This document shows positions 1,762 to 56,800 of a DNA stretch of 64,000 nucleotides, in pieces (positions within the stretch are counted from its first letter, which is position 1; every line of letters starts with the position of its first letter). The translations under genes were made by a program, and so were the position numbers. The stretch lies in NCBI GenBank assembly GCA_030704615.1, contig CM060732.1:80848001-80912000 (forward strand), given 5' to 3'. The DNA is from Takakia lepidozioides (lineage: Eukaryota; Plantae; Bryophyta). The notes under the pieces were generated by a model. That model searched no databases. It was not told the origin of the DNA and was given only the letters and a program-made list of their open reading frames with translations.

Positions 1762-4077
1762 TCACCAATAATCCCCGCAAGAACAAACCCCATCTTGGAA
1801 GTGGTGGAAGCGGTTGGCATCCCGTACAATAACTGCACGCCCAACAATCTTCGAGATGAACTTGGTGGCAGTGTGGCAGTGACCACACACGCGAAGGTTT
1901 TTGATAATGTGGATGGGCATCCCAGCGGGTGTGCTAATCAACCCAAAAGCAATGGCCAGCTTCTCACTGTGGGTGCAAAGAGAAAATTCCTTTTGCTCCT
2001 CCCCAACTTCACGCAATACAAAACGCATGTCAGGCAAGTACCCTGCCTCCTTCATCTGCCAAGACAATCTCTTCAGCTCTGCATGGATTTCCTCAATTTG
2101 TGGATGCAGATTGTCGTCTACCATGAATGTATGCACCTGATTGTCCACCTCGATGCAGCAGTGCCCTGGCTCTTTTTGTACACCTCTGTCCTGCATCATT
2201 GTCCTCACCTTTGCTGCATCGTCCCACCTGCCAGCAGCAGCATAGATGTTCGATAGTGACACAGAAGTTGCTGCATTCTGTGGATTCCACTTGAGAAGGC
2301 ATCTTGCTGCACGTTCAGCCACTTCCATGTTACCATGAACTCTGGAGGCCCCAAGCAACGCCCCCCACACTGCAGCACCTGGTTCAACTTGCATCTTGTT
2401 AATTAAGTCCTCTGCCGCATACAATCGGCCTGCACGGCCAAGAAGGTCCACCATGCAGCCAACATGCTCCACAGTGGGAGTGAGGCCAAAATCTCGACTC
2501 ATGGAGTCAAAGTAGTGGCAGCCTTCATCAACTAGGCCCACATGGCTACATGCAGAGAGAACACATGTAAAGGTGATAGGATTTGGCTTCAATCCTTCCT
2601 CTTGCATTTCTTCAAATAGTTGCAGGGCCTCCATACCACACCCATGCTGTGCATATCCTACAATCATTGCACTCCATGAGACCACATTTCGTTCAGCCAT
2701 GTTGTCAAACACTTTCCGTGCATCCTTCATGCTCCCACATTTGGCATACATGTCAGAAAGGGCCGTCTCCACAATGATCTCTGGTGCAATTCCAGCTTTA
2801 ATGATGTCAGCATGGATTTCTTTGCCCTTTTCCAGGGCTGCCATGCTGGCACATGCATTGAGGGCGCAAACGAATGTGACCCTGTTGGGCGTCACCCCTG
2901 CCTGCTTCATTCCCTCATAAGTAACCAACGCCTCCCTACCGCATCCATGCTGAGCATATCCTGCAATCACCGCATTCCATGGGACCACATTTGGCTTCAA
3001 CCCTGCCTGTTGCATTTGTTCAAGGAGTTGCAGGGCCTCCCTACCACACCCATGCTGTGCATATCCTGCGATCATTGCACTCCATGAGACAACGTCTCGT
3101 TCAGCCATATTGTCAAATACTTCACGCGCATCCGTCAAGCTCCCACATTTGGAATACATGTCAACAAGGGTATTTTCTAAAATTACACATGTCCTAATTC
3201 CAGCGTTGATAACAGAAGCATGGACCTCTTTGCCCTTTTCCAGAGCTGCCATAGTGGCACATGCCTTGAGAACAGAAACAAATGTGACCTCGTTGGCTTT
3301 TACCCCTTTCCCTATCATTTCCTCATATAGCTCCAAGGCCTCCTTGCCGCACCCTTGCTGGACATATCCCGCAATCATGGCGCTCCACGAGACCACGTTT
3401 CGTTCAACCATACTATCAAACCCATGACGTGCATCCTTTATGTTCCCGCATTTGGCATACATGTTGACAAGGGCAGTCTCCAAAATGATGTCTGGTGTAA
3501 TTCTAGCTTTGATGATGTGATCATGGACCTCTTTGCCCTTTTCCAGGATTCCTAGGCTGGCACACGCATTGAGAACACAAACGAATGTGACCTCGTTGGC
3601 CACCACCCCTTCGTGTATCATTTGCTCATAGGTTTCCAGAGCCTCCCTACCACACCCATGCTTGGCATATCCCGCAATCAGTACATTCCACGTATAAACA
3701 TCTCGTTCAGGCATGTTGTCAAAAACGAGTCGAGCATCTACCACACTTCCACACTTGGCATACATGTTGACAAGACTGGTAAGTAGAAAAATGTCTGGCT
3801 TGAATCCACTTTGGATAATGTGGTTGTGCACCTGCTTTCCCTCTGCTAGGCCTTTCCTCTTGATGCACTCCTGGAAGAGACAGACATAAGTATTGGAGTC
3901 TGCCAAAATGCCTCCTTGGTTCAGAATATGCAGCGCCTTTTTCAGTTGTCCTGCCTTGCAAAGTGTCCTCACATGCGCTGGAGAGGCAGAAGAGTTGTTG
4001 TTGACTCCTGCTCTTGGTCCTCTTTCAGTAGTGGCCATGGTGGCAGTGCCTGACTCAAACAAATGTGCCTGGTTCAA
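1762..4077 (-). CDS. PLS-class pentatricopeptide repeat protein with E/E+ and DYW cytidine-deaminase domain (organellar C-to-U RNA editing factor)
   Basis: Intronless 771-codon ORF with repeated P-L-S motifs ([30 protein letters not shown]), a PG box ([10 protein letters not shown]), HSEKLA, the CGHCH zinc ligands and C-terminal CSCGDYW. The first in-frame ATG is at 4038; the true start may lie there or in an upstream exon. Confidence 0.96.
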
Positions 4078-6701: not shown

Positions 6702-8977
6702 ATGATGGACTCCAAGGAGATGCCAAGCAGCAGTCTGGAAGCGACCGCCATGAACGAAGGTAGGTGCTTCGGGTACTGTATACTTTGATGATCCGTTGCT
6801 GTCCTCGGGATTTTGATGGTTTGAATTGGTCTTCTATGTGTTGCGATTGGAAGCAGATTTCATTTTCAATCAAGTCTTGGGCAGTTGAGAGGTGTTGTTT
6901 TATCGCACCGTTACCGATGAAAGACCAAAGATATTATTTCAAAACAGGGGAATCTCTTAATTTTTCTGATCGTAAAGTCTCACACTACAACTAAGTCCAT
7001 TACCGAGACTTTGCCCGTGTTTGCTAAGGTCTAGATATCCAAGATGTTGGGCTTTACATTCAGGGGTCTATTCAAAGATATCGATCTCCTTGCTACATTC
7101 TAGAGATAAGCTTTAAAAGGTAAAACCAGATAGCCAAATCTGTATGATGGGAAAGCTCGATGAGCAAGGTCTGTATTCTTTGGACGCACCTACGCAATCA
7201 TTTTCCCAGACCACTGATTCCACTTCCTTGAAATTTAAATTAGAGCAGTTGCGTAAACTAGCATTCAGTCAATTCCCAGGGACTCCATATGACAATGGAT
7301 GTAAGATGAATCCCTTGGCTGCTGATCGTCCTAGCATCCCACAAGAGTCGCTCCTCGTTCAAGGATGCTCGTTATTAGTAAGGATTGCTTTCTTCATATT
7401 ATTGTGGGCAGAAGAATGCAGAAAATAAGCGAAGATAAAGAAACCACACCGCCCTAGTTTTCCTTCGCTTCTGAACACCTTCTAGATGAACATACAGCTG
7501 GGAAAGTTACTGCCTTTTCCAAGGTGAGAAGATACTCACATTTTCTCTCACAACTCCGTTGCTGACATCTTGAAGACATGTATTATTCAGCAAGTTCAAG
7601 GTCTCTGCCTGGCTTCAATTTATGAAATTGTCAAATTTATGGACCACTCAAAGAGTTAATTCTTAAAGTAGGGAATGCCATTTGATCACTTATAGTTGAT
7701 AGATAGAGAAAGCAGTATGTTTTGTGAGCTCCTAGGGTTTAGTATAAGCCTTGTTTCTGTGACGTTCTGCTCTTTACAATGGCCCTCAAGTGCTCATGCT
7801 TATTGAAGGTGGTTTTTCGCTTCGAAATTGCTACTAACTGTAAGCACAATGTGCCTTCAGATGCAGATAAGAAGGAAGAAGACTTACTGATAAAGCCTCA
7901 GCTACCTGAGTTCTATGATCCGGATATTGACACGGTCAATGAGGTGTGGGCAGCGCAGCAACGGAAAAATCGGAAATCAGATGCTGTCCTTAGTTGCCCT
8001 GGATGCTTCACCACCCTTTGTATTGATTGTCAAAGGTCATAATTTAAACCCTTCATTCAATCTTTGGCTGTGGCATGTGAAAGTTATGTGTGGAAGTTGT
8101 TGAGCTTGGCTGTGGTATCCTGGCGGATCTACGGTTATGTTTTTCAAGAGTACAAGTAGCAATTTGGTTTTGCTCATGTTTTGGAGGGAAAAGATTGATA
8201 TTACCTCAATACCAGGATGGGCGTGCAAGAAAAGAAAAGAAAAGAAAGAGAAATGTATCTTTCCCTGTTAGGGTTGGCCATGTTGGCTATGACAACCCTT
8301 TGAGGCTAGGGTACTAAAGCGTTGCGGGTGTGCAGCCCGACAGGGCACACTAGTCTCAACCCACGATTTTCAGCTGGCATTGACTTCATACTAGAACGTA
8401 TGAGATTGTTTCTGGCACTGCTGGTCACTGTCAAAGAAAAGGGCAGAAAGAGAGGGCTTTTGAGTGTCACGTATATGTTAGGAGAGCTACAGTTCAAAAA
8501 ACACCCATGTCTTTGGCACCAGTGCGGTGTTATCAAGTTTCAGCCTTGCCCTCCTTGTTCTATTGAAATCATCCACTGCTCTCCTCCCTCCAGCTTGAGG
8601 TTCCTACGTTGTGATTCCAAGTGGAAGTAATGTGAGTGGTCCACTTTACATGCAGGCATGAACTATATATCCATCAATACAGGGCTATGTTTGTCAGGAA
8701 TTGCAAAGTAGTGCAGACTGAAAGGCTACAATTTCAGCTCACTGCACAAAGGAAGAGGTGGCGAAACGGTCGTCGCAAAGGTCGGCAGCGAGGTGATCAA
8801 GAGGGGGGAGGGCCAGTATCTGATAGGGTAGGGATGATTTCTGTGAGTGAAACTAGTAATGCTAATGGAGACGAGATTTACAAGCCGGTGAGATGTGTTG
8901 AGTGTGAAACAGAGGTTGGATTTTTAGATAGTGAGGAGATCTACCATTTTTTCAATGTAATGCCAAGTTACTCCTAG
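6702..8977 (+). CDS. EAPP: E2F-associated phosphoprotein (EAPP)-like protein, 3 exons
   Basis: Exons 6702-6759, 7861-8035 and 8656-8977 join in phase across GT-AG introns. Motifs FYDPD.D, SDAVLSCPGCFTTLCIDCQRH..Y..QYRAMFV.NC and Y.PV.C..C.TEVG..D.EE.YHFFNV.PS match the Eapp_C family. Confidence 0.9.
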
Positions 8978-11472: not shown

Positions 11473-14400
11473 ATGGCTGACATCACAGAGTTGCGGATAG
11501 TACTTCCCATGACAGGTACTTCCTGAATCAACCCAAACCTCGCCTTCTCTCAGTTGCCATGGGTATTTGTCCCTCATTTTCGTGTGGTAACAGGGGGTGA
11601 CATACTTGATTGCTTGGTTGTGGGCTAGCAGTGGAAGAATTCAGGAGGGCACAAAAATTTGCAAATTGCAGAACCAATGAACACAACACCGTGGAGGGCC
11701 AGGGAGGCCAGGTTTGAATTCCATCCATGCCTCACATTTCAACAATCCCCACTAGACTCCTAAGGTGGAGCCATTGATCGTAACTCACTGGGAAAAGCTT
11801 GCCCGTTTGCAGCCCTCTAGCTGTTTCAAGGCGTGGTTATGCATCTTTTTTGTACCTAACTGCACTTTTGGCTTCTTAATTTGGAACATTTGGTGCATTT
11901 GGGGATGGAGGGAACAGCTGCTTTCAAGTATGCCTTACGAAGATGAGGTTTGGGGAGTGGGCACGTACAGTCACAGCCTTTATCGCCTTGGAGACCGCCT
12001 ACCTGACTGGGTAGGTGACTGACAGACAGAATGCACATCCTCCTTGCAGAAAGTAAATAAGCAAGAAAGAAACTTATGACGGGAAAATTACAACAACAAG
12101 AAAGAGGAAGTGCTTCATGCAGGTAAAGCTGAATGGGAAAAAGAAAGAATGTCAGTGTCCCAAGTCCCATGGGACAAAGTAACAAGAAACTCACATCAAG
12201 AGAAAGAAGAAGGTAAAAGGAATTATTACATCCACTGAAGGCCAAAAAAGTAGAGTAACAAATATACAGATTGAAAACCAAAGGATTGCTCAAGTGTGGC
12301 AAGACGCAAGGATACCTGATGCAGGTGAGACACAAAGAGAGACAGAGAATGAAAGAAATGAAATGATTCTTAATAATGTCCGCATAAAGCTTAAAGAGCT
12401 TATGGGACAAGAGAAAGCATGAAACAAGAAAGAGCGAAGGCCCTCTACAAGCAGCCCAAAAACGACTGTTGCTTGAGGGATTACGTCTGCTGGAAGCCCA
12501 GAGTGTCCAATGTGCTCCTGTAAACAACACAATAGAGAACCACAGGAACTAAAATGTAGACCCCAGAAATTTTTGAGAGCAACATCAAGCCTCGGGCAGT
12601 GGTGTGTCGGTTTTGAAGTGCGTGGATCCTGTGTGTTGAAGTCCAGGTATAGTCACTTACTATCCACAAGCTCTGACAAAAGAGGGTGGTGACAGGTGAC
12701 CCGTCTGGTGCCATCAAATGCACTAGTTATTGACGAAAAGACCTGGATGACGTACCCCTTCAGCCGCACAGTCATTACAATCCCTTTCTTCCGCAAGGTT
12801 TGCTGCAGCTGCAATAGCTTTCTTATTCCTGCTTTCTGCAACCTCCCTTGAGATGTAGGATGGTAAGTTTGTAGGTCTCCCTCTTTTTTGATGTGATTTC
12901 TGTTGTTGTTCTACTTCATTGAGTGGGCCCTCTGCCCCCGTGTGGATGTCTTTCGTTTGAAACTTTTTTCTTCTTTGAGCTTTTTTTTTCTGCCTTTTCT
13001 TTCTGTGGATGTTATAAAGTATCATTTCATTTCTTTTCCTTTTGTCACTCTCTGGACTTGGAAGGTTTTTCCTTTGAGATTGGATAATTGAGGTGGCTCA
13101 TTTAACTCCAGTAAACATTTGTGGTAATGGTTTTGTGGGGTCTCGGAATAGCTGAAGATAGAGATGCTGAGCATGCACGTGGATGACAATGGTTCAACTG
13201 ATAACATTCTTGGCCTCAGTGAAGCTGACCTTGCCATCCGTCAAGTGGACATGGTTGACATTGCAAATGACCAGGTTGAATTTTTATGTTTCTATTTTAT
13301 ACACAAGTAGAGGATGGGGAGGAAGAACAAAGAAACTTTATTACGTTAGCGGGAGGCCTAAAGAGCCCAAGGGACACAAGCAGAACAACACTGTAGAAGC
13401 ACAGAAACCAAAGAACAACTGAAGAAAGATAGGGGAAGGTAGTAGGAAGGAGGAGATCTACTCGTTGACTGCATCCTGCTGGAACTTTCTCTTGCAACAG
13501 CCTTATCACTTGTAGTCCCAGGAAATAATTTTGGAGCTTTTGTGGTTTACTTTGTCCATGCACAAGTTTGAGTGAGACTCATTTGATTTCAAGCAGACAC
13601 ATTCAGTTGCATAAAATAGGCTGATTTGGTATGGGCAGGTTCTAAAAAGGGATTATCGCGCAGAACTCGACCCAAAGCTGTACAAATCAGAGAAGACTGG
13701 GCAAGTCTCGTTCTTTTCCAGCCTGTTACTTGCAGTTATTCACTCTCATTGTGACCTCACTCACTCACTAGGTTTAAGTGTCTGACAATAGTTCGTAGAG
13801 GATTAATTCCAGCAATTCTGCAGAGACAGAGACAGATGCTAGTTCATAATGAAGGGTGTCTGATTGGTTTGACAGGCGTGGGCCTTTAGTAAAGGATTGG
13901 CGTGTTACAGTGGAGCCGGTGATGTGTGCATACAGGCTAGTGAAAGTGGAAGCCAAGTAAGTAACTGGTTCCTTTCACGTCTTTTGTCCTCCTGGAATAA
14001 GCCTGCATCTCGCAAGTTAGCAACTAAAAAATTCTGTACTAACCGTGGCCTTGAGTTATTGCAAAGCGAAAAGATTTTGTCTGTCTCAGTGCAGCCAGGG
14101 TGGTTTGATGGTGGGGCATCCCAGTGTGGCAAATGTCAATGTATATGCCTGTGAATGATACCATGGTGAGATGAGGCAGGATATATGATTTTAAATAATT
14201 TCTCTTTTGATAGAACACAAATCTGAAGTAGAAGGATTCGCATGTTACTTGAAAGGGTAGGCTGGATTTACAGTTATTATGGATTCACAATTTTGACCGG
14301 GCTTTCAATTTCCTTTTCAATCATGTACCTGCCAAATTGCAAGAAACAAAGTTGCTCTTGCACTTTAACTTGCTTCTCTTTCATTTGTCTGCTAACTGTT

Positions 14401-17400
14401 TCAACTCTCTTTTGTTGCTGCAGCTACTGGGGATTTCAAAAGCGCGCACAGAAACTAATGCTGAATGGCATCCGCCAGGTGGCACCCCACTCCTCAAGTC
14501 CAGAAGAAGAGAAGAAGAAAGGAGTAGTAAAGTTCACTAAGTTGGAGTTGTGCTTCCAGTTTCAGCTTGTTTGTACATATTAGCTACAAGAAAAATGGTA
14601 TTGAAGTTTCCCATTTTGTAGTCACCAATCACCTTTTTGGCTCTGAGCTCTGGCCCTGGAAATGTGGTTGTGGGTTCAGATTGTCCTACTCACTCATCGC
14701 AATGCGTTCTGCTGGCTGGATGAATGGTTTGACCTCACTTTTGATGAGGTCTGGAACAATGTCGTTGTAAACCTGCTTGAGATCTTTATCACCTAATCCA
14801 TGTCCATGCCTGCATCTGCTGTCTGTATTCGGTCTCTTGCATGGCCTTAACCCTTGACCCCTTCTGTACCTAAAGCTCTTGCATGTCTTCTTTTCTTGCC
14901 CCACATCTTTTCTTCATTTGTTCTTTCTTTTCAGGAGAGAAGACATCTCAACAGTAAGTGATGCTGTGTTCTATAGTGGGCATTCAGATATGCGCCCGGG
15001 AAGTAGAAGGGCGGCAGAAGTTGAGGGCCACAGTGAAGCACCCACCTCTAATTGATGCCAAAAATGGCAAAGAGCCTGTGAATGAGGACTCCTCCTCCAG
15101 TGACGACAGTGGTACCAGTGACATAGAAATGGAGTTTTTCGAGGCTGAGGTAATCCTGTTTTTGGATAAATTGATCGCAACCTTGGGTGGCCAATCTGGT
15201 ATTGACCTCCTTTCAGTTCTTGTGTGGGACTGTTTGGATGAGATGTGGGCAACTAAAACGTGTTTGAGGAGAGAGTCTCCAACCTGCACTGGACTGTATA
15301 TAACTATCCAATTGAAATCGGACGTTTGAATGGGCGTAGATGGAGTGGGCCATTCAAGATGTGGATCAATTTGGTGTTTGCCAATCGTCAGGTCTGCTCC
15401 TTCTGATCCGTAGCCACTCGCATGCTCGATGTGGTTGTCCGCAAGCATACCCTTATGTACTTGTGATGTCTGTGGCACATGTTTTAGACATGGAGCCCTC
15501 TTTGATGTGACAAAGCACTACTCTCCATTCACCTTTTTGTATACGTCCCCAGCTTTGCTGTGATTATTTCACTGTAAACCAAGGCATAAAATTTGCATGT
15601 AAAAGGATTTGATAAATTGTCTTTTTGTGTGGCAAAAGCAGGGTTGGACACATTGCAGCTGGCCTGTCCACCCCCACCCTCAGATATACCTTCTAGGTAC
15701 AGTAGTGTCCTCTCTTATGTCAAACACTGTCATTATCAGTTGACTATTGATCTCCAAGGACTTTTGAAGGTCCCTGCGAGTGTGTTGATCTGCACAACTT
15801 TGGGGCAGTGCAGTAGAGGTTGTTCATGTGCCTGGATTTTCAGACTTGGAACCAATATTGGAGGATGAGCTGCTTGATTAGAGAATCAACATTTTGTTCT
15901 TGATAGAGGTATGCTGACTCTTATGTCTGGGTGGGATAGATGTGCAGTGTGTGCTGCACGTGGGAAGGCCCTCCAGTCACCAGTGCTTCTGTGCAAAACT
16001 TGCAACGAGTTCTTCTGTCAGCTCTGCTTTTCTGAGGTAAGTTACAACTTGTGCTTACCTAAGCCCCATGCTTGCTTTGACAGAGTGGGTGAGTGGCTGA
16101 AAGAAGGGATTGGAACTGGTTGTGAGAATGGAGACTATCATTGCAGAAAGTTTGCTTGAAAAACTTGTGCGTTGATGGGAATGATCACCTTGAGTAGAAA
16201 TTCATACCATTCATGGAAAGCCCAAAGAGCTTGTGGGATAAGAGCGTAAATGAAATGACTCTTTATGACATCTGTGGAAAGCTCAAAGAGCTTATGGGAC
16301 GAGAAAGCAGGAAACAAGAAAGAGCCTTCAAATCAAACAAAGAAAAATTGGAAGATAGAAAGAAATGAAATGAAATGGTACTTTATAACATAGAAAGAAT
16401 GAAGAAAGAAACTTTATAGAACAGAAAGGGGTGAATTACTGTCACACAGGCTTGTTCCCACGTGGAACTTACACTCAACAACCTATTCAAAAACTCTGAT
16501 TGTTGATGAAAAACACCTCTGTTCCATTTCTTTTCATTTCATTTCATTCCCTCTTCGTCTACAATTGAGAAGAATTTTGACAATATGCTGATGTTTGTGG
16601 GTGTAGTTTCATGTCACCCCACGCCTAAAGGACCATGCCAGTCAGAGTATCAGAACATGCCTGGATTCAACAAATTCCATAGATCCTGCCTCACTGGCTC
16701 CCAGTTTAGGAGAGCTGCGGGGTCTGGCCAAGACCAGGAGTGACACTGCAGAGTTGGATCGCCCTCCACTTTCTGAGAATGGACAGGACAGAAAAATCCT
16801 CCCCAAACAGGTGACACAAAGTTCCTCGTCCCATCACCCTTTCAAGATTCTGCTCATCTCTTTAGTGTCACTGGAAGTGAAATCGCTGCGAAATGTGCCA
16901 CGACCATATTCAGGTAGGGGGCTACGATGGTAGTGTTGACATCAGCCTTATGCTGCTTTCAAGTATGAAATCAATACCATCAAATCATCATCAATCGAGC
17001 AGTACCGGAAATCTTGGGCCAAGTTTCATACATGCTAAATGAAAACTGCCTGATCAGCTCCTGAATGGTTGGGCTCCACTGACAACTGATCGTGTCATGG
17101 TTCTTCCATGATTATTTCTCATCCCTACTGTCCCCTATTCACCTGTGGATATTCTTTCTTTCTGTCTTCTACATTAAGAATGCAAGATATGTTGGGAGTT
17201 TTACCTTATGTCTTTGGAGCGTTGTGTGAGTGTTGAGTCTAGAAACAGTACTTGCACTTTAAAGGAGTTGGTGTGTTGACTTGAAGGTGGATGGATCAGT
17301 GAGAGATGTGGGCGACCCACTTAAAGAGGGAAGACGATCGGTGAGAAGAGCATCAAAACTGCGACGTAGTCAAAGTAGCTATGGTGCACTGAATGCATTT

Positions 17401-20400
17401 CTGGAGTCTGGCTTTGAGGACAACCATGTCCAGGTTGGTTCTGCTTTTCTCGACTACTTTTTGTTGGGTTTGAGTAGGCTACTAAATATTGTGGAAAGTG
17501 AGGGAGCGAGGTAGGATTGTGCCCACACACGCACACAAATGGCCTTTTTGAAGAGAGACATCTGGCTTCCGGGAATGTACGTGTGAGAGACAGGAAGACA
17601 AAAGCTGTTGTCCAAAGGGCCGACAGGATGCAGTGGTAATAGAAGTAAGCTAGAAAGAGGAAACCAGATTTCAGACTACGGAAAAGCTTTTAGTGGATCC
17701 ACCGTAGATGAACACATGGACCTATGAGCAGCCTAGTGCTGTGCTGATCACACAAAGCAACAGGGACAAATGATTCAATGCGTAACTAACTAGTGAATTT
17801 AAGTTGTTTATAGGAACCACAGGAATCAGCTTCGCTGGAGTATGCCAGTCTAGGTGCAAACAGTAACAGTCCAAATGAGCTCTCTGAAGAACTAGTGCGA
17901 ACTTTGTCCTCTCTCTATGAATGGTGTTCTGAGTCGTACTCTTCAACTTCATTATCACGCGGTGTGTCACAAGAGTTGGGATCCCCCTATCCCAAGATAG
18001 GTAGTCCGTCCTCCCAGGTATTTATCTCAGCAAATGGGGCATTCATGTGTAGGGTTGACTTTGGAAGCATTAGTAAGAAAGGATGTGAAGCTTTGCAATA
18101 GCTATGAAGGACAAAGGCCATTGCGAGGTTGTTCTTCCTCTTCTGTACTCAATAATTGTAGTAGATCGAAGTTGAAGATGTTTTTTTTGCTGGTTTACTG
18201 AGGAGGAATTTGGATCTACAGATATGAGTATGGCACTCACTTTATACAAGTCTCACAGTTTTCTCACAGACGATTTGCAAGCTAATCTCTGTGTTCCTTT
18301 ATGTTACAATTGTCCTTGCAGAATCCATCAGTTCTTGGGATGAACCTGGAGAATAGAGGGGAGGAGGGAGCACTTGATCCATATGGTATCAGAGAAGAGA
18401 ACTCTAGCTGGGAAATTGGGCTGTATGCGAGAAGTTTGGAAGTGGTGGTGGTCCCCACAGCAGAGAAGTTGAATAAGCACAGTACTTTGCATCAGCATTT
18501 GAGGTGATTATTTTGCGACAGATGTGTCTCTCTACAGAACAGTTTGTCTTGTTCTTTGGCTCCCCCCACCTTGAGTACCATTTCTTATTCTCCTCTCCCA
18601 CATACCGTTAGATACGGAGGTGCTGCTGTCTCTTTAGGGACTCCCAGTCTTGGCGGACGCTTTCAGCTCTGACGACCATAAGTGTCTGGCAGCTTCATGC
18701 AAGAGGCGCTGGTACGTTTGGTGTAATTTGATATGGGCTGTTCTTATTGTTCTACTTTATCCCATGGGGCCCCTTTTGACACTAGAAAATTTCCTCCTTT
18801 CTTGCTTTCTGTCGCTCGGTTTGTTTATGGTAAGGTGGTGGTTGTAGGGTGCCCAAGTTATGATATGTACGTAATAATTCTGTCTTTTCTTAGGCCAACA
18901 AGCCTTCCAAGCAGATTTGCTTTATTTCCTCTCTGGTGTCATCTCACAGGTATGTAGTCTGGGAGGTGCATTTAAGGAGGCCACATTACCTGATTCGGTC
19001 ACTCCGCCAGTGTTTGGGGTTTGATTGGGTCTTTGTACTTTTCTTTGACCGGTGGTCATTGGTAGACTTTGGAAGCTAACTTATGTCTGCGATGGCATTG
19101 ATCAGGGCACTGGTGAAGGGATTGAGGCATGTGGAGCCAAAGCAGATGAATCACGAGCAGTGCCTTGCTTTTTGGATCAATATCTACAACTCGCTGTTGC
19201 TGCATGTACTAAATCTCGGAAATCAAGCTCTCTTTTGATGCTTCCTGTTTTTACTTTTATCCGCTGCAATGTGAAATGAGTGTCAGAAGAAAAGACAAGA
19301 AGAGGAGAAGATTAGTGTTTTGACACACACGGGTCTGACAACTCACAGCCTGTTGATCACAAAGAAATTGATGGTGAAGAAGCATCTTAAAATCTTAAAT
19401 CTTTTGATTCACAAACATTCCCGGGTTCATAGTCTCTTACCTGAGAATGAGTGGAGATCTAGATATGAGCAGATGTGAAGTGTTGATCAGCTTATGAAAT
19501 CTGAATCTGGATCTCTTTCTACCTTGGCATGTGGACAGGCGTATTTGGTGTATGGGGTGCCAAAAGGCCATTACAAGCGCATCGCTTTTATGAACAAGGT
19601 ACACTTCTGTTGAAACTGGGACTTATTTCTAGAAAATAAAATTTTGAATTACATTGTCTTTTTCTCTGACTCCGGCTGTCTCTTCTTTCTAATGGAGTGC
19701 CCTATGGATGCAATGAAGTTTTTCTTGTCTTTTTTTCTAATGGGTGGCGGTTCCACTGTGCATTCGTAGTCCCATGTCCCACTTGTCCCATGTTGCTAGG
19801 TGACATACATTATCGGTGGATGTCAGTATACCCCACTGGCTATCGAGCACTCCATCCTCAGGGCTAACTCTTACCGTCCCACTTTGGTACGAACACTCTC
19901 TCCCTCAGTGGACTTAATACATCTCTTTTCTTTCTCTCTGTTTTTTCCACCCCTTGAAAGTTAGAAACCAAAAACTCTCTCTCTCGTGGGCCCCCATGGA
20001 TTCTCTGTAGTTATTTTCTTTCTATAGTTGTATTTTGGGCTGCTTGTGGAGGGTCCCTTTCTCTTTCTTGTTTCATGCAATCATAAGCTCTTGGAGCTTT
20101 CTGTGGACATCATCAAGTATCATGTCATTTCATATCTTTGTGTCTTCACCAAGGCACTCCATCTTTGTGCAGCAATTTAAACTGGGTTTCTAGTTGTTTC
20201 TTTGTTTCGAAGTTCCCTCCTTTCTTCATTCGTGAGGACCGCCTGTGCCCCGCTTGCACTGGAAACAACAGGAAAATCGTGAGATACCCAATCTCTCACA
20301 GAGGTCTTCCATGACGTGGATCAGACATTCTTAGCAGCATATCTACATGAGGCATTGACGCTAGACAATCCCTTGAACAATTGTTGTTTTTTGGGCTGCT

Positions 20401-21301
20401 TGTGGAGGTCCCTCTCTGTCTTTTTTCATGCTTTCTCTTGTCCCATAAGCTCTTTGAGCTTTTTGCGGACATTATAAAGTATCATATCATACCATTTCAT
20501 TTTATTTCTCTTTCTTCTCGTGAATTTTGGGTGAGGAAAGCTTGGCTCTCTTATTACATCTCTGTTGATCTCCAATCATGTCAGAAGTTTACAAAACCCC
20601 ATAGAGTTGCTTCTCTTTTTCATTTATGCATGTACCTTGTGCACTTTCTGCATCACTTTGATTTTGCCTGCAGAGTTTTTCCTTTTGTGAGTTTGACAGT
20701 TTCTTAGGGTGGTGACTATGAGTACAGGCAAGCTTGTTACCGATTCGTAAGTACAAGAAGAGCGACGAAAGATTTTCTTGTGCACTTGACCAGGCGGAGC
20801 CTCTCATCAGCTTTGCTCTCTGTTGTGGTAGCAGGTCTAGCCCTGTGGTAAGCCCCACCACAAACCCCCTTCTTTCTCTGCACTCCCCCTGTTGAGCTAC
20901 CAAATTAAGTCCTCATCCTGAACCATTCTGGGAACCAGAACATCTGCTTAAAAGAGCTGTTAAATAATTCTTCCCGACAATGGCACTGTCTGCAGGTGCG
21001 GACATACACAGGGACAAACATCCGGGCCGAGCTTCAGGCAGCATGCCAAGACTTCATAATGGCAGCAGTGGGTGTAAGTCAGAAAAAGCATGTACTCATC
21101 CCAAAAATCCTACACTGGTATGCCCCAGACTTCTCACATGATGCCAAATCTTTGGTTGAGTGGGTTGCGGAACAGCTGCCTGAAGACAAGCGTGCAGCAT
21201 TGGATGAGTGTGTGAAGAAGAAACCGGGCAAGTGGTCACAGCACCGGATGTCAGTGGTTCCTTATGATTGGAGCTTCCGATATCTTTTCGACCATCGGTG
21301 A
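11473..21301 (+). CDS. Multi-domain protein: START-like phosphatidylinositol transfer (IP_trans/PITP) domain + FFAT-like motif + B-box-like zinc finger + DUF547; 20 exons
   Basis: Phase-consistent exons: 11473-11515, 11632-11711, 11918-12010, 12696-12797, 13152-13274, 13639-13700 (GC donor), 13876-13956, 14424-14478, 14680-14748, 14988-15149, 15340-15391, 15948-16036, 16607-16810, 17287-17433, 17814-18017, 18322-18503, 19106-19205, 19539-19598, 19800-19886, 20728-20847, then the terminal exon 20996-21301 (21 segments in all). PITP motifs: ELRIVLPMTVEEF, G.GTYSHSLYRL, KTGRGPL..DW, MCAYRLV, YWGFQ, HRNAFCWLDEWFDLT. DUF547 motifs: PNELSEELVR, LAFWINIYNSLLLHAYL, IEHSILR, EPLISFALCCGSRSSP.VR.YT, IPKILHWY, PYDWSFRYLF. 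Confidence 0.85.
12340..12640 (-). mobile_element. 3'-end fragment of non-LTR retroelement (family A), intronic
   Basis: Reverse complement of the recurrent motif tttttgggctgcttg..gagggcc..tcttgtcccataagctc..gagcttt.tgcggacattat..ag.atcatttcatttc. Confidence 0.7.
16200..16400 (-). mobile_element. Clustered family-A retroelement 3'-end fragments, intronic
   Basis: Two or three partial copies (gaaatgaaatga..ctttatgacatctgtggaaagctcaaagagcttatgggac). Confidence 0.6.
20025..20515 (+). mobile_element. Two family-A retroelement 3'-end fragments, intronic
   Basis: Copies at ~20025-20140 and ~20230-20510. The second starts with EDRLCPAC, a remnant of a LINE ORF2 C-terminal zinc knuckle, and ends in (TTTCA)-like repeats. 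Confidence 0.7.
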
Positions 21302-23039
21302 TTCAGATCGGTCGCAGTCAGTAGGTGGCAAGGGTTGGTCATGTATATTGATTGGCTGGAGTGTGTTTAGTCAAGGCTTCGGCATCGTTGCAGAGAAGCT
21401 CTATTGGGCTTGTGTCTCCCTCCCCCTACCTCTTTCCTCATTGTCACAGATAAATTCTATTTCTATCTTTATTCTGAAACAATCTGAAAGACAAGCCTAA
21501 CATTGATCACGGTCACTGTCAAATGCAACCAGTATGAAATCTGCTTTGGAATTTGCAGATTTCAAATTGCCCACTCTGCCACTAGCTTTGAATGATCCAG
21601 ATGACTTCTCCTAGCTGCATGCAAATGCCATAGAACACAAGTGTACCTGTTGAAGATCCATAGAGGTATCAAATTTGTTGGCCAACAGATGTAACAGAAT
21701 GTTCAGACTTATAGAGCCACGGGATGACTGCAAGAATCCAGGTGTAGAGCACCATGGAGGTTGCAGTGTGCAAACTAAAATTGAGATTGGCCACTCGCCA
21801 GTGCAGTAGTAAAGCACCACAATTTCTCCCTCTTTCACATTTTTGAGTGGAGGAATTATCTGTCGCAATGATACAACAAGTATCTCAGCACTGCAATTGC
21901 AAGTTGACTCTTAACAAGGGGCCCCCTCTGCAACTACCCTGGGACCACCTCTGACCTACAAAGACTGGTTGGTTTCTCTACCAGCTTGCCGTAAATGAAA
22001 CTGCCCAGACAAGTCAAAACTCAATAGATGTTTCGGTATCCTTGTTCGAGAGAGGGCCGATGGGAGCCCTGAATATGTCTGTGAGCCTTCTTGTAGCAGC
22101 TGCATCTGCTTACCTTTCCCCAACAAAGATGAGATTTGCAGGCTGTTCACTCAAATTGAGAATGAAATAAGACTTGGCTGGTGCCCAGTTTACTATCAGT
22201 GCAGAAGGGCTAAAGCCAGGCCAACAAATACTTTCGTGCAGGGTTCCCAGTGAGCTGCTGCACCAGTTTCCGCTCTACATGTTTGGGAAGGGAATTCTTT
22301 GTGGGTGATGGCACTGCCAGAAGTGGTGGAATTGCCTTCTACCTCACACTAGTCAATATCTGGCCTGGTCCTGTTTCTCTCAACCTGACAAACACATCAA
22401 TGTTAACTAACACAAGTCTACAAGCCTGGAACCCCTGCAATGTTCACTATTCTTGCCCTGGGGTTCACATAGCAATTCCAATTCCCCACGTAACTATCAT
22501 CCCAGCTTTCCCCGGATACCGTATGCTGCATCAATGGCATCACCCTGCGGGTCTGCAGCAGAACCTGATGACTCAGCATCATGCACACCTACTGCTCCAT
22601 TGTATACAACTACACTCACATTCCTTCTTGGATGCATCAAAGGCGGTTACTTGAAGGAGGTCATCATCCGCCCAGTATGGCTAGTAAACAAAGTGAATGA
22701 GGTGCTGGTGATATTCAGGGTCTACATAATCAATCCTGGGCCTGTTCGGTTTCTGCCCAATGACGCACTCTTCGAGTTTGAGCCAATTGTTTCGGAAAAA
22801 GGTCTCCGCAGAGGCTTGCTCGGCCTTTACAGCTTTGCAAGGAAGGTACTGGAATGTATGACAGTACATTGGGATACATACATGGGATACATACAGCATG
22901 GGATGGCAACCATGGGATGATGTATCATCATCAACCCTAGGGTTCAGAAGATCTCTTTCACTCTCCAGCGGCTCGCTGCGAGGTCTCCAACACGAAGGTC
23001 AGATTCATGCTCTGAACTGTTTGGGTTAATCTTGTTGTG

Positions 23040-23985
23040 ATGGCGAAGTCAAAGAATCACACAGCGCACAACCAGTCGTACAAGACGCACAGGAACGGGA
23101 TCAAGAAGCCTAAGAAGCAGAAGTACACCTCCAGAAAAGGGGTAAGCTATTCTTTGTGGAACCTTGAAGTTTGTAATTTGTTGTCCGAAGCAGTAATTGT
23201 TGAAGAACGGGAGTTGGAGGCGGAAAAGTCATCTCGGTTCCTCTCCATGAACTATGCTGCGCTTTTGGAGATGTTCATGTTCTTGCCTCCCCTGTTTTCA
23301 ATACTTCTCAACGATTAAAGAGTATGAGAAAACACTAGCTTTTTAACTCATCATGGTCTCAATCACTTTATGCACAAGTTTGTGAGGCTATTGAAAATAG
23401 GAGACAAGCATACATCAGCAAGTGTATTTGCATGGAAGGAACTTCTGCAACGAGAGTCTATGCTTTATGTATAGTGTAAAGCACCTTCCCTCGAGGAGTT
23501 TCCACGACCACGATTTAGGACCCGCCCCAGAGCGCTTTACACTGAGAAACCAGTTTGAGATTTTCTCTTACATCATTTTCATTGGTGAAGTTTCCTTGGC
23601 GCACTGTTATGTTCAATCTCTCGCCCAGGGCATGAACGTGTAACCAGCTGTTCCATCTCCTTCACAAGGAAACAACCCTAACCAATGGCTCCTGTAAAGT
23701 GGAGTTCATTGTGCGTGTCAGACGAAAGTAATCATCAGGTTTCTATGAATGGATCATGAATTCCCTGTCAGTGAACAAAAGTCTAGATTGGGGCCTCGTA
23801 CAAGAGTTTGCACGAAATTTGGTCGTTAAATATGTTGGCAAATGCTGCATTTAAAATCTCCTGAAGTTGTTGGTGTGGTGGTGCAGATGGACCCTAAGTT
23901 CTTGAGGAATCAGAGATATGCCAAGAAACATAATCGTGTGGGCGGCGACAACAGTGAAGTTGATGCTGCTGAAGAAATGGAATGA
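23040..23985 (+). CDS. RPL29: 60S ribosomal protein L29 (eL29), 2 coding exons
   Basis: Exon 23040-23141 [34 protein letters not shown] plus exon 23887-23985 [32 protein letters not shown]. Confidence 0.96.
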
Positions 23986-38039: not shown

Positions 38040-40348
38040 ATGGAGCCCAATATTTTCGATGAACTAGAAAGGGAAGTTGTTCCTGACAGCAATGTTGATA
38101 ATGAGAGAGCTTTGGTGGAGTGCCATGTTGCGGAGGATGCTCATCATGAAGCCTCATTTACATCAGCTCATCAAGCCTCGGCTGCAATGTCATCTTCCAC
38201 AGTTTCGCCATCACACACGGTGTTGGATGTGGAGGCGCAGCTCCTAGTACTTGAAAAACAACGGGATTTTTGGAAGCCCCACAATCGCACTGCTTCGACA
38301 TGGGCATTCTATGCAACAAAAGACTCTGCTCCAGTGGACATAACAAATCCACAACAAATGAGGTGTGTTCTATGTCATCCTGTTGGTGTCACTCCTGCAA
38401 GCAAGAAGGGCATTGTGACCTATAATAAAACCAATGGTATCTCTGCCCTTCAAAAGCATGTGGATCAAGAACATGACATTGTTTTGCGTAGGTGGATTGA
38501 GAGGGAAAATGAAGGACCTGAGAAGGCCCATAGGCCAGCAAAAAAGAGACCCGGCCCCACTCCTGGAAACATAGCTTCTTTTTTTGGGAGCTCCACTCCA
38601 TACAACCAAAATGATGATCAACAGAAGCAGTTCAATGAGGATTTAGTCTTATTCATTGCAAAGGAGTTGGTTCCACTGTCTTTGGTAGAATCCCTTTGGC
38701 TAAGAAGGATGGTGTTGAGACAAAATCCTCGGATTGTTTTCCCTTCTCGACGGACATTTGTGAATGAGGCCATTCCAATCTTGGCAGAGAAGACGAAAGA
38801 GCGCTACATGTCCCCATCTCTTCAGAGTTGTGCTACTTGCTCCGTGAGTTTTGATTTGTGGATGTCAAGAGGGGGAACTGACACTTTTGTCATCATAGCG
38901 CACTCTTGGCATGTTTGAGACACCTGACACATCTGGGGCTGCCATGGCACATCAAGTCAACAATCTTCTTGTGAAGTATGGCCTCAATACTCGCATTATT
39001 GCTTACGTCAAAGATGAGAGAGGTAACTTGGCCACTTTGATGCTTTGAATTCGGTGGTCTCATGTGCGTGTTTGGGGTTGGATTCTCCATTTGTGGGTAG
39101 CTGTTTTGGGCATGCAATGTCCAAGTGTTGCCAGTATGCAACAAATGATGCAAAAGTATGCGCAGATATGAGATCGGTTTCTATAAAAAATGCCCAATCA
39201 GAGTTGCAAAAAACCATTACTTGGACCAAAAAAAGTGGCAAAGGGAGACAAGAATGGGCAAAGGCATGTGTGGACAGCGGCATTCATCCCCGCAAACTGA
39301 AGACTCCGGTGAAGACACGGTTTGCTTCCAATGTGATCCTCTTCCAAGAGACTTTGGAGTTTAGGCAAGCCATAATCACTTGTTACTCTAGGCAAACCTC
39401 ATTGGAACTGCAGTCTCGCATACCAAGTCCACAAGTGTGGGCCATTGCCCAATCAATTCTACAGTTCTAGGGCCTGTGGTTCATGAGTGCATTATGAATC
39501 AATCTGGGGGATTTTGGTTGTTGTCCGATGCTCTTAATGCAGCCATTGCCACAACAATTCGCATGCGAGGAAGTAGTGCTGGGGGGGCTGCAACTGTGGA
39601 TCATTGCATGGGGGATTTCTCAACAGAGTTGACATTGTTGGAATGGCGGATGGCTCGAGAGGTGGTATATGTCTTGGAACCATTTCTTTCTTTTTTGGAA
39701 GGGTTTCAATCGCGCAAAGCTCACAATATGCTCGCGCTTATGCTTGACCCACGTTACAAGGGGTTGTCATTGGTATCACAATATGTGGGCAAAGAGCGTG
39801 CTTTGCATATTGTGTTCCAATATGATAGTATGGTGTTAGAGCCTCTTTTGGTAAAGTGTTTCAAGGTCTTACATCCGGATACTCCGGCCCAATCACAGCC
39901 CACTTCTACAATGGACGAGATGTCCTTATTTGGTGTGCATGACCACAATGAAGACATGACATTGACAGTGGTGAGAGAACAACTATCACATTTCAGAAGG
40001 ACGAAGATAAATGAGGGTGAGTGCGTGGCTCCTTTGAAATGGTGGAAAGAACACAAGTCTCTCTTTCCGTATGTGGGATTTTTGGCACGGCTAATTTTGG
40101 GCATAGTTGGATCTCAGATTGAAGCTGAGAGGGTTTTTAGTATTGCAGGTGTCATAACAAACTTGAGACGGTGCAGGTTAAATATTGAAAACCTTGATAT
40201 GCTTGTGAGTGTAGTCAAGAATTGGCCAAATGATGCTAGAGTTGGTTGCTTTAGTACTTCCATGAAAGAGTTTTTGGATAGGGAAGAAGTCCTCTTAGAT
40301 GAGAATGAGGACTTGATTGCAGAGGCAAACCTCTTTGAGGTAGACTGA
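38040..40348 (+). pseudogene. hAT transposase, frameshifted
   Basis: BED-like finger (WAFY..RCVLCH..LQKHVDQEH), SFDLWMS (first catalytic D), AYVKDE (second D), CFGH (CxxH), KTRF, and LKWWK..FPYVGFLARLILGIVGSQIEAERVFS (catalytic E / dimerisation domain). Frameshifts near 38910, 39040 and 39460. Confidence 0.92.
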
Positions 40349-53800: not shown

Positions 53801-56800
53801 GCCTGGATGGGGCACAGGCGAGGCCAGCAGCAACACTAACATGGGCCTTGGGGCTGGGCTTCAAAACTCACTTGCGGCCCTTTATCGTCCACCATTTGTG
53901 CTCATATTTCAGGGCACTTTTGAGCAGGTTGCAATTGCACTTTCTCATGTTTGGTCATCACGAGGTTACTGCAGCTGGTTGAAGACTCTGTTGTGTTTGA
54001 AGTTCAGTAGAGAGAAAAAATAGGAAATAATTTGCTGACCTTGTACTTGCTTTTAAACTAGATCTGTGGATAAAAAAATGTAAGCAACTTCACCCTTGAC
54101 TCTCTTACATGTGCACATCTAGGAATATTTCCACATTCCTAGTATAGCTTTTTGAGCTTGGAGGACCTTATGTGCAGGCCAAAACAGAGGCTGCGAGACA
54201 AGGAAAGTGGTTGCTTGTGAACTTGCAGTCAACTAAAGAGTTCTCCAGCTACATGGTAAGAGCTGATCTCAGATTAAGGTTTCCTTGAGCATGTAGCAGT
54301 CATATGTGAAGCCATTAGTGCTGTAAGAGTAGTGGCATTTGTGCAAAGGGTTATGAAACAGTAAGACCATCAGTATCTATGGTCTTGCCTGCTTTCCTCT
54401 TCTGTTGGAATTGTGGACCTTAGATGCTAAACCATGCTATGCTATTAAAGATACTGCTGCATGATGATATCATAGGCATTGCATCTATGGCAGTTAGGGT
54501 GGTGTTGGATACCAGTTTGTCTGAGGGGAGAGAGTATGGCTTGGGTGGGCTGCAGTTAAACCGAGATACCTGGGCACATGAAGCAGTCAAGGAGACTATT
54601 GGCACCTCATTTGTGTTCTGGCAGGTCTGTACATGTATCACCCGGCACCTCCTTTCCCTTGTAAAAGCCTGGACAGAAATTTTCTTTGTTAATTTTAGGT
54701 CAGTTTATTTTTGTAACCAACACAAGCCTATGTGCCGGTGTTGAAAGGCCTATCATGTGTAACCCCTGGCATGCCTTTCTTGTGTAACCACTGGTGAAAA
54801 TGTCATTGGACATTACATCATAATATCCTTCTCACAAATAGAATAGTACAAAATTTCTGCCTGGTCTTTTACGAAGTGGAATGTACGAGGCTGCAGGATT
54901 TGCCTGATACACTCCACCATACATTTTTTGTTCCCTGTTACCAATGTCCTTGTCAGTGTCAGCTAGTTACTGCTGGAATACAATTCATTTCGAGATCCTT
55001 TTCAGACAAGCTTTCGGTGCAGGAGAAGGTAAGCTGGTCACTTATAAAGATGAGTATCAATATGTTGCAAAATTTGTGTATGCGAGTTTACTGGCATACC
55101 ATCACAGTGAAGGCCTATTCTCTTGTCCTCGGCTGTTGATGGGGAAAACGATCTTCTGATTTTTTTGTCTAATGTCTTTACATCTTACCAGGTATATGAT
55201 GACACAGAGGAAGGCAGAAAGGTGTGCACATATTATAAGCTGATTGGCATGCCAACAACACTGGTGCTGGACCCTCTCACGGGGCAGAAGATGCGTGCAT
55301 GGGAAGGCATGATTAGCGCCGAGCGCTTGTTGGAGGTAAATGCCTTGTATTCATCACTATGTACACTCCGTTGTCGTATTGCCACCTCCTAACACATGCA
55401 GGGAAAGGAAGGTCATTGGATGGCAAACTTACTTTGGTTTTACAAGTCTTCAAGCAACTGGTGGCAGGTTTTATCTGCATGGTAAACTAGGCAACCAGTT
55501 TGAGCCTGCCAACTGTCTGCCCCAGACGAGCCTTTTCCAGTTCTGCATTTTGTTGGTGAAATAAGAACAAAGTGCAATGAAAGACTTTCTCCATGGGTTT
55601 TATTTCGTGTATTAGGTTGAGGATGTAGTATGGTGGTTGAAGTGTACTAGACTTCTGATTGTTGAACCATATCATGCTGAGTGGTAGGCTTCTGTGGCTG
55701 GGCTTGATCGCAACTGACATTTGGGGCATCTTGCTTGTGGACCTCCCAGATTGAACTTTTGTAAACACCAAAAATTGTCTCTTGCAATGTGTGATGAGTA
55801 TTGCCTTAACAAGGCTTATGGTGTGCTTTTATTCATCCCTTGGGTATCTTGGTCATGTAACCCTACAAATACTTGGCCCCTCAAATCTACTAGGTGGTGG
55901 CCCAATGCAGGACTTGGTGCCGTACATGGACAGGGGTCCAATGGAAAGGCAACCCCTTGGTGTTCCTCCTCAAAAACGTGCGCGAGAATCAAGTCAGCAG
56001 TACATGCAACCCTCTAAAGATGGTACTGTTTTCTCTTTGCTCTTAGTGGATACCTGACCTTGCCTTAATTGCAGCATCTGCTCATTTGTCGATGTGTATT
56101 GCATTTGCAGGCCCATCATATGAAACAAGTTCACCCCTATGACTTTGGACTTGGACAGGTCGTGCTAATCGGATGTTTCTGGATGGACCATGTCAAATGT
56201 GCCATACAAGTATCAGCCAATTGTCATGCGTCTGTTAATCCAGCTATCTTTCTATGATGTAAATGTCTTTGTAGATGATAAACCTTGTGGTAACATTCCA
56301 TTTTGCTTCAAGATTTGCAGATATTGCGCATATTGGGATATCGGTTGACCAGGATGAGGATGAAGAACTGCGACGAGCATTGGCTGCTTCTCTGGAGAAT
56401 GTAAATGCACTAGTGCCTGATGCAGGGAACCAGGAGACAACAAAGGTAGTAGAGGGAGTGGCTGATGGTCAATCTCAGGCAGATAATGTTACTTCAGAAG
56501 CTATAAGACCCATAGCCTACCCAGAGTTGCCAGAGGAGCCTGATAGTCGTAACCTCGCAGCGTGTCGGGTGGCTGTGCGGTTTCCAGACGGCAGAAGGGG
56601 CCAGCGAAGATTTTTGAAGTCGGACCCTATCAAGGTAGGTCTTATATCACTGAATGTCATGTATTTTCTATGCTCAATTTGTCTGTCAAGATCAGTTAGC
56701 TGATAGCTGTTAGCTGTCTGTCATCACACCATCTTAACTGCATGGCAGCTTGAATGTGCTGGCTAAGTGTGTCCTGAGTTTGGAGTTCTTTAAAAAGGAC

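Follow-up and report, generated by a model that had tools for sequence, protein, structure and literature searches.

The window, by which we mean the whole 64,000-nucleotide stretch of Takakia lepidozioides DNA analyzed here, contains one real, transcribed gene whose product joins a START-like PITP (IP_trans) domain, an acidic FFAT-like motif, a B-box zinc finger, and a DUF547 module. The best explanation for this protein, and one that we hold tentatively, is that it is a multidomain cytosolic carrier acting at contacts of the ER with an anionic membrane, its cargo being a glycerophospholipid without inositol, in all likelihood phosphatidic acid (PA). The preliminary description of this locus had proposed the same string of domains in a single gene, and exon-level Pfam matches, transcript contigs, and orthologues agree on it.

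The gene has an open frame on the plus strand from the ATG at 11473 to the TGA at 21301. In the corrected model, its coding sequence has 22 exons, 2484 nt, and 827 amino acids with no internal stops, and the originally described in-phase exon chain without a stop in the spliced frame holds in this form. All introns are GT-AG with the sole exception of intron 6.

11473-11515, 11632-11711, 11918-12010, 12696-12797, 13152-13274, 13639-13700, plus strand: coding exons 1 to 6
13701-13875, plus strand: intron 6, GC-AG, its joint present in contigs of both runs
13876-13956, 14424-14478, 14680-14748, 14988-15149, 15340-15391, 15642-15696, plus strand: coding exons 7 to 12
13957-14165, plus strand: extended form of exon 7, using a donor after 14165, with both runs carrying the joint 14165/14424
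15940-16036, 16607-16810, 17287-17433, 17814-18017, 18322-18503, 19106-19205, plus strand: coding exons 13 to 18
19539-19598, 19800-19886, 20728-20847, 20996-21301, plus strand: coding exons 19 to 22

Transcription was assessed with the contigs of two public runs, each from a different study, aligned on positions 13620-19610; that these runs are RNA is a guess, and their contigs do skip introns at GT..AG. In this interval, all joints between exons 6 and 19 are represented, and a loose end runs into exon 20, so that the joint 19598/19800 has one loose contig end behind it. Three of the four junctions predicted in the preliminary description (14748/14988, 15149/15340, and 16810/17287) are present in the contigs. 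The fourth, 15391/15948, belongs to a 21-exon model whose frame is also open, but this joint is absent from the contigs, which instead carry 15391/15642 in both runs and 15696/15940 in one. The resulting exon 12 (15642-15696, 55 nt) and the start of the next exon at 15940 add 21 codons and make the B-box complete; the Physcomitrium counterpart of this exon has 43 nt and the same phases. A further candidate exon near 18610-18710 is skipped by the contigs (joint 18503/19106). In the isoform with the extended exon 7, codon 195 is followed by a stop (13958-13960) that lies within the PITP domain; no conserved element scoring above shuffles was found in intron 7 when the window was compared with Physcomitrium.

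The preliminary description had named PITP transcripts ending before the DUF547 exons as the sign of two genes, and such a pair of mis-joined neighbors, one encoding the PITP and the other DUF547, would suit the absence of any listed Takakia contig that spans the whole stretch, the greater contig depth over the 3' exons, and the in-frame ATG with which exon 11 begins. Overlapping contigs nevertheless link exon 8 to exon 20. The Physcomitrium orthologue likewise has 22 coding exons of identical phases. Its full 842-amino-acid sequence is indexed in 108 short-contig blocks, and five RNA contigs contain the entire open reading frame, which removes the case for two genes; the same architecture moreover recurs from Chlorokybus to Marchantia. 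We regard mis-joining as scarcely credible.

The domain layout was obtained by searching Pfam with the window gene exon by exon, whereas fold models and full-length searches were made on public orthologues. The spliced window protein itself entered the frame check, local alignments, motif scoring, and trees.

11473-15030, plus strand: START-like PITP (IP_trans) domain, amino acids 1 to about 250, exons 1 to 10, from Pfam, residue alignment, and orthologue fold
15075-15348, plus strand: acidic tract and FFAT-like motif EFFEAEM-EW (amino acids 285-293), split by intron 10
15941-16636, plus strand: B-box zinc finger, amino acids 327-368, C-x2-C-x13-C-x2-C-x4-C-x2-C-x4-H-x7-H
16637-17870, plus strand: poorly conserved linker, amino acids 369-494, 2-34% identical to orthologues
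17871-21301, plus strand: C-terminal MIP1-type DUF547 module with PNELSEE helix, DPYG motif, and C-terminal extension, Pfam core from about 19137

IP_trans matches fall in exons 3, 4, 5, 7, and 9 in profile order (E values of 0.02 to 2.4e-7), and DUF547 matches fall in exons 18, 20, and 21. The cysteine-rich exon alone gave weak B-box matches, including ANCHR-like_BBOX at an E value of 5.6e-4, under that model's cutoff, and PF22586 (B-box) was found on orthologues. Neither DDHD nor LNS2 appeared in the exon scans or in orthologue annotations, the MIP1 leucine zipper (PF14389) was absent from the exon scans and from two orthologues, and no transmembrane segment was found in the window protein (best 19-residue hydropathy, 1.4). 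Weak single-exon Pfam matches to Tat, T6SS_VipA, and ICE2 were taken as chance. A PDB sequence search with one exon gave no match, and an Atlas feature search with the Marchantia orthologue gave no usable match.

The PITP domain is the best-conserved part of the protein, with 67-76% identity to bryophyte orthologues compared with 12-34% in the linker, and the orthologue model is a confident PITP fold that matches PITPalpha bound to PI (1uw5; E value of 2.5e-25, TM 0.87 by target). In characterized PITPs, the inositol ring is contacted by T59, K61, E86, and N90 (rat PITPalpha numbering) and the phosphate by Q22, T97, T114, and K195 (PMC2635478, PMC8266687). K61 and N90 are essential to PI transfer and to RdgB function in vivo (PMC4582195, PMC8266687), and PC transfer requires C95 and F225 (PMC8266687). 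The window domain keeps E86 but carries T59S, K61S, N90M, C95S, F225T, and K195R. Across the family, position 61 is S, T, or N, position 90 is M, I, V, or A, position 225 is T or A, and no full-length member has Cys at 95. Q22, T/S97, T/S114, K/R195, and the W/Y-W docking pair, with a class II-type Y-W at positions 203-204, are kept, as is the exchange-loop region, and N26 and N30 on helix A are new and family-wide. None of the 39 family PITP domains scored has K61 or N90, whereas 129 of 133 other fetched PITPs have all of T59, K61, E86, and N90, a comparison in which many rows are near-copies and so do not count as independent events. The Mesostigma model, whose 59-61 region is mis-modeled, retains N90.

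PI transport by these domains is therefore unlikely, since single changes of this kind abolish PI transfer in RdgB: in Drosophila RdgB, K61A and N90F abolish both the binding and the transfer of PI, and neither mutant rescues, with PA transfer largely unaffected (PMC4582195). This separation of PI from PA in inositol-site mutants is what makes a non-inositol, PA-type carrier the best reading, and the loss of both K61/N90 and C95/F225 with retention of the phosphate contacts supports it. The reduced PA binding of the RdgB mutants, and the increased PC binding of K61A (PMC4582195), weaken it. We infer that PA is the best-supported cargo, with PC or PE as alternatives.

The preliminary description had suggested RdgB/Nir2-like exchange of PI for PA, a function that would now need inositol to be bound by compensating residues. 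The order of PITP domain, acidic FFAT-like motif, and C-terminal module does mirror class IIA, the lack of C95 and F225 is of class II type, kinship with class IIA is not rejected by the AU test (p 0.22), and Mesostigma keeps N90. The family-wide loss of K61 and N90, the alteration of T59 and K195 as well in the window protein, and the absence of DDHD and LNS2 argue against such exchange, which we consider improbable. That the cargo at the contact site is PC, PE, or PG, a zwitterionic or other lipid instead of PA, is unlikely too, if less remote. A pocket that retains E86 but is without the charge of K61 could accommodate an amine head group, the family-wide N26 and N30 could reshape the pocket, and the K61A result in RdgB is joined by the PC transfer retained in class I PIBR mutants (PMC2635478); the residues needed for PC transfer, C95 and F225, are missing from the full-length members.

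The candidate for attachment of such a PA carrier to the ER is the FFAT-like motif. Its core has a conservation of 0.83 compared with 0.39-0.51 in the flanks, forming a conserved island. With the scoring table of Mikitova and Levine (PMC3261905; cutoff of 2 or less, one garbled cell taken as "at least 2"), the window motif scores 2.0, exactly at the cutoff, and 0 of 200 shuffles were as good. Scores in the family span 1.5-3.5, and those of Physcomitrium and Ceratodon (3.0-3.5) fail the cutoff and exceed the level at which targeting was blocked in the reference assay. The defect of the motif is position 7, which is hydrophobic in all land-plant members; E at position 4 is tolerated, as EFFEC-S binds VAP strongly (PMC3261905). 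The Mesostigma motif, FYEADE, is near-canonical. As an FFAT, the window motif is borderline by its sequence, and the part of the explanation that invokes VAP is weakened by the hydrophobic position 7, by the Physcomitrium and Ceratodon scores, and by the orthologue model, in which the motif is drawn, at low confidence, as a helix. This modeled helix and the near-invariant E and W/L just after the core would also fit an additional or altogether different role.

One such role would be that of a lipid-sensing scaffold, in which the B-box and DUF547 change their activity or location when the PITP domain binds a lipid and EFFEAEMEW acts as an intramolecular or partner-binding helix. The conserved E and W/L are unnecessary for VAP binding, and the helix and the failing moss scores suit this alternative, as does the precedent of PITPNC1, which binds PA tightly and transfers it poorly (PMC8266687); the DUF547 module, with its invariant surface set and CCGSxSSP motif, may be an effector. 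The long acidic tract before the motif, its position behind a lipid-transfer domain, and the Mesostigma sequence, by contrast, fit an FFAT, and conservation of the docking pair and exchange-loop region speaks for transfer. On balance we consider a scaffold somewhat unlikely. The B-box itself has six Cys and two His ligands that are invariant in 14 sequences. B-boxes in general serve in oligomerization or partner binding, and this one may do the same.

The C-terminal approximately 330 amino acids correspond to the entire conserved module of plant MIP1-zipper/DUF547 proteins, minus the zipper. The last 230 amino acids are basic (net charge of +12, pI of 9.4), with like values in orthologues and many paralogues. 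The module is modeled with a pLDDT of 87, and Foldseek found no solved structure at an E value of 0.001 or better; the best VIA match had a Z score of 5.8 and was generically helical. In other proteins, DUF547 occurs together with DEP, RGS, or glutaredoxin domains in a single fused chain. A 2026 preprint places the Arabidopsis protein UCHIGAWA, which combines a MIP1 zipper with DUF547, at a polar plasma membrane domain without a transmembrane segment or lipid anchor (bioRxiv 10.64898/2026.08.17.745151). This location is compatible with a role in membrane targeting, though not one pinned to DUF547, and membrane binding may be indirect or zipper based. On this indirect support we infer that the module of the fusion protein could be its anchor to the second membrane, as suggested in the preliminary description. 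The contact-site part of the explanation is supported by the conserved FFAT-like island, the absence of a transmembrane segment, the basic DUF547 module, and the plasma membrane location of UCHIGAWA.

Taken as a mechanism, the favored PA-carrier explanation would have the FFAT-like motif bind VAP27 weakly on the ER while the DUF547 module, perhaps aided by B-box-driven oligomers, holds the anionic target membrane, which would probably be the plasma membrane. The PITP domain would extract PA produced by PLD or PLC/DGK and carry it back to the ER, with no PI delivered in return. Delivery of PI would be left to the separate bryophyte PITP that has T59, K61, E86, and N90 or to Sec14 proteins.

The fusion is not confined to Takakia. 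The last exon of the window gene retrieved an 834-amino-acid Physcomitrium protein, and proteins with IP_trans, B-box, and DUF547 were found in Physcomitrium (two), Ceratodon (two), Sphagnum (two), Marchantia, Riccia, Calypogeia, Closterium, and Chlorokybus; a further member is presumably from Spirogloea, given the style of its gene id. Marchantia has one copy among those found (Mp7g02200/MARPO_0088s0067) and Physcomitrium two (LOC112279243 and LOC112289860); these genes, like Sphagnum CY35_18G027300 and Chlorokybus Chrsp77S07688, carry automatic annotation only. The four-part layout of IP_trans, acidic FFAT-like motif, B-box, and DUF547 is kept in mosses, liverworts, Zygnematophyceae, and Chlorokybus. 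The Mesostigma model has the PITP, acidic motif, and B-box and ends before DUF547, and one algal contig carries the same N-terminal half. The window protein clusters with mosses (100/99), near Sphagnum, in agreement with the early land plant host originally proposed, and its closest relative is 62% identical.

No fusion from vascular plants or hornworts was found in the homologue searches and a metagenome scan, although DUF547 paralogues of Selaginella, Diphasiastrum, Adiantum, and seed plants were retrieved. Loss in vascular plants is likely, and only that, because no more than 8000 candidates are scored in these searches, which overlooked several algal members already known. In free trees that sampled class I, class IIA, and stand-alone bryophyte PITPs, the PITP domains of the family come out as a single group (99-100), separate from all three. 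AU tests rejected neither a grouping with class IIA (p 0.218) nor one with the stand-alone bryophyte PITPs (p 0.39). For DUF547, the modules of the bryophyte fusions make up a clade of their own (99) to which none of the sampled vascular-plant proteins belongs, and the algal ones are unresolved at the base of the tree. Convergent, independent assembly of the fusion is plausible from these sequences. Horizontal transfer from animals or amoebae had no support, the family tree following plant phylogeny.

No paper on the architecture or on five family gene ids was found in a search that covered literature other than subscription papers, which is in line with the novelty supposed in the preliminary description. 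The architecture is nonetheless no local oddity: it marks a pan-streptophyte family, ancient and apparently undescribed, that sits unannotated in public proteomes apart from automatic annotations that already display the string of domains. In its fullest form, the explanation would make this family a PI-blind third class of START-like PITPs, of PA type, tethered to the ER by FFAT-VAP27 and to the plasma membrane by DUF547, older than the branching-off of Chlorokybus and Mesostigma and later lost in vascular plants. We consider this possible but doubtful; were it true, DUF547 would be a general membrane-targeting module, which would explain its MIP1-zipper, DEP, RGS, and glutaredoxin fusions.

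The four inositol contacts have been held to be the hallmark of START-like PITPs, and here a conserved natural family has dropped K61 and N90. The residues by which class II PITPs recognize PA are still unknown (PMC8266687), and the family gives a direct route to them. It also provides a candidate ER contact-site lipid carrier for bryophytes and streptophyte algae, seemingly missing in vascular plants, and offers a way of assaying DUF547, which is widespread and without a solved structure. With one copy found in Marchantia and two in Physcomitrium, knockouts and localization are straightforward.

Among known systems, the class IIA PITPs (Drosophila RdgB-alpha and human Nir2/PITPNM1 and Nir3/PITPNM2) share with the fusion an N-terminal IP_trans domain (approximately 40% identity to the Sphagnum orthologue), the lack of C95 and F225, the Y-W docking pair, an acidic FFAT-type motif after the PITP domain (a borderline one in the fusion), and a large C-terminal module, with no transmembrane helix. 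They differ in keeping K61 and N90, in a motif of the form EFFDAxE rather than EFFEAEM, and in having DDHD and LNS2 in place of the B-box and DUF547, and the two clades are separate in the free trees (SH-aLRT, 99-100). Judged by sequence, the fusion falls outside class IIA, since both the inositol-binding residues and DDHD/LNS2 are missing, though its topology may work like that of RdgB. Class I PITPalpha and PITPbeta (1uw5, 1t27, and 2a1l) have the same fold (TM 0.86-0.87 by target, 36-38% identity), whereas the fusion is multidomain and without the PI and PC head group determinants. Plant Lzipper-MIP1 and DUF547 proteins such as UCHIGAWA (AT2G23700) share the basic C-terminal module of approximately 330 amino acids (35-42% identity, Atlas TM 0.80 by query) and the absence of a transmembrane segment, but the fusion lacks their MIP1 zipper. 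The stand-alone bryophyte IP_trans proteins (Marchantia paleacea Mapa_000477, Riccia, and Ceratodon) are START-like PITPs of the same genomes; in contrast to the fusion, they retain T59, K61, E86, and N90, have no FFAT-like motif (best score, 4.5-5.5), B-box, or DUF547, and form a separate clade.

In several moss genes for PITP-B-box-DUF547 fusion proteins, intron 7, which lies inside the PITP domain, is mis-spliced, and the common outcome is a 195-aa product ending in KVEAK-stop. The stretches concerned are listed below, L004, L012 and L010 being further sequences that bear on moss intron 7.

Sites of intron-7 mis-splicing
window 13957-14165
L004 1073-1460
L012 210-830
L010 578-1271

The fusion gene of the window has an alternative donor at +209 of this intron, with contig depths of 9.6 versus 10.1 and 23.7 versus 42.2. 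One Physcomitrium paralogue keeps the intron in full (13 contigs), the other probably uses a +4 donor, and another moss reads through it. Moss intron 7 may represent conserved unproductive splicing. The stop after KVEAK arises automatically, because it is supplied by the donor consensus of the intron, and intron 7, the one intron that the splicing survey covered, contains no conserved element.

A short dispersed repeat, matching over as much as 77 nt at 91%, lies in introns 3, 4, 13 and 20 of the fusion gene, with copies facing either way. Contig depth on the intron-13 copy is very high, which points to a high-copy element.

Copies of the dispersed repeat
window 12352-12462
window 12984-13046
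window 16248-16403
window 20082-20139
window 20388-20501

Compared with the window, the contigs lack 3 nt where the acidic tract has its Ser run and carry a few substitutions in this gene, and four consecutive C>A changes are confined to one run; these differences are probably alleles or other accessions.

Differences between contigs and window
window 15089
window 17844
window 17922
window 18453-18456

The window also encodes other proteins, and the two neighbours of the fusion gene are unrelated to it.

Other genes in the window
1762-4077, reverse strand, PPR-E-DYW protein (771-aa ORF, canonical DYW C-terminal end)
8636-8977, forward strand, E2F-associated phosphoprotein (Eapp_C), upstream neighbour
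23037-23318, forward strand, ribosomal protein L29e, downstream neighbour
39437-40348, forward strand, hAT transposase dimerisation domain
56275-56703, forward strand, UIM/UBX-domain exon

In Calypogeia fissa, a 370-aa paralogue (P0284) has a family-type PITP with N61 and I90, yet C95 (rat PITPalpha numbering), and the FFAT-like motif, B-box and DUF547 are all absent from it, an apparent secondary truncation. Bryophytes also possess separate START-like PITPs of 470-560 aa (proteins P0170, P0181 and P0244), in which the inositol-binding residues T59/K61/E86/N90 are intact and the tail is Ser-rich. The liverwort stand-alone PITPs combine C95 with G225, a mixture of class I and class II marks.
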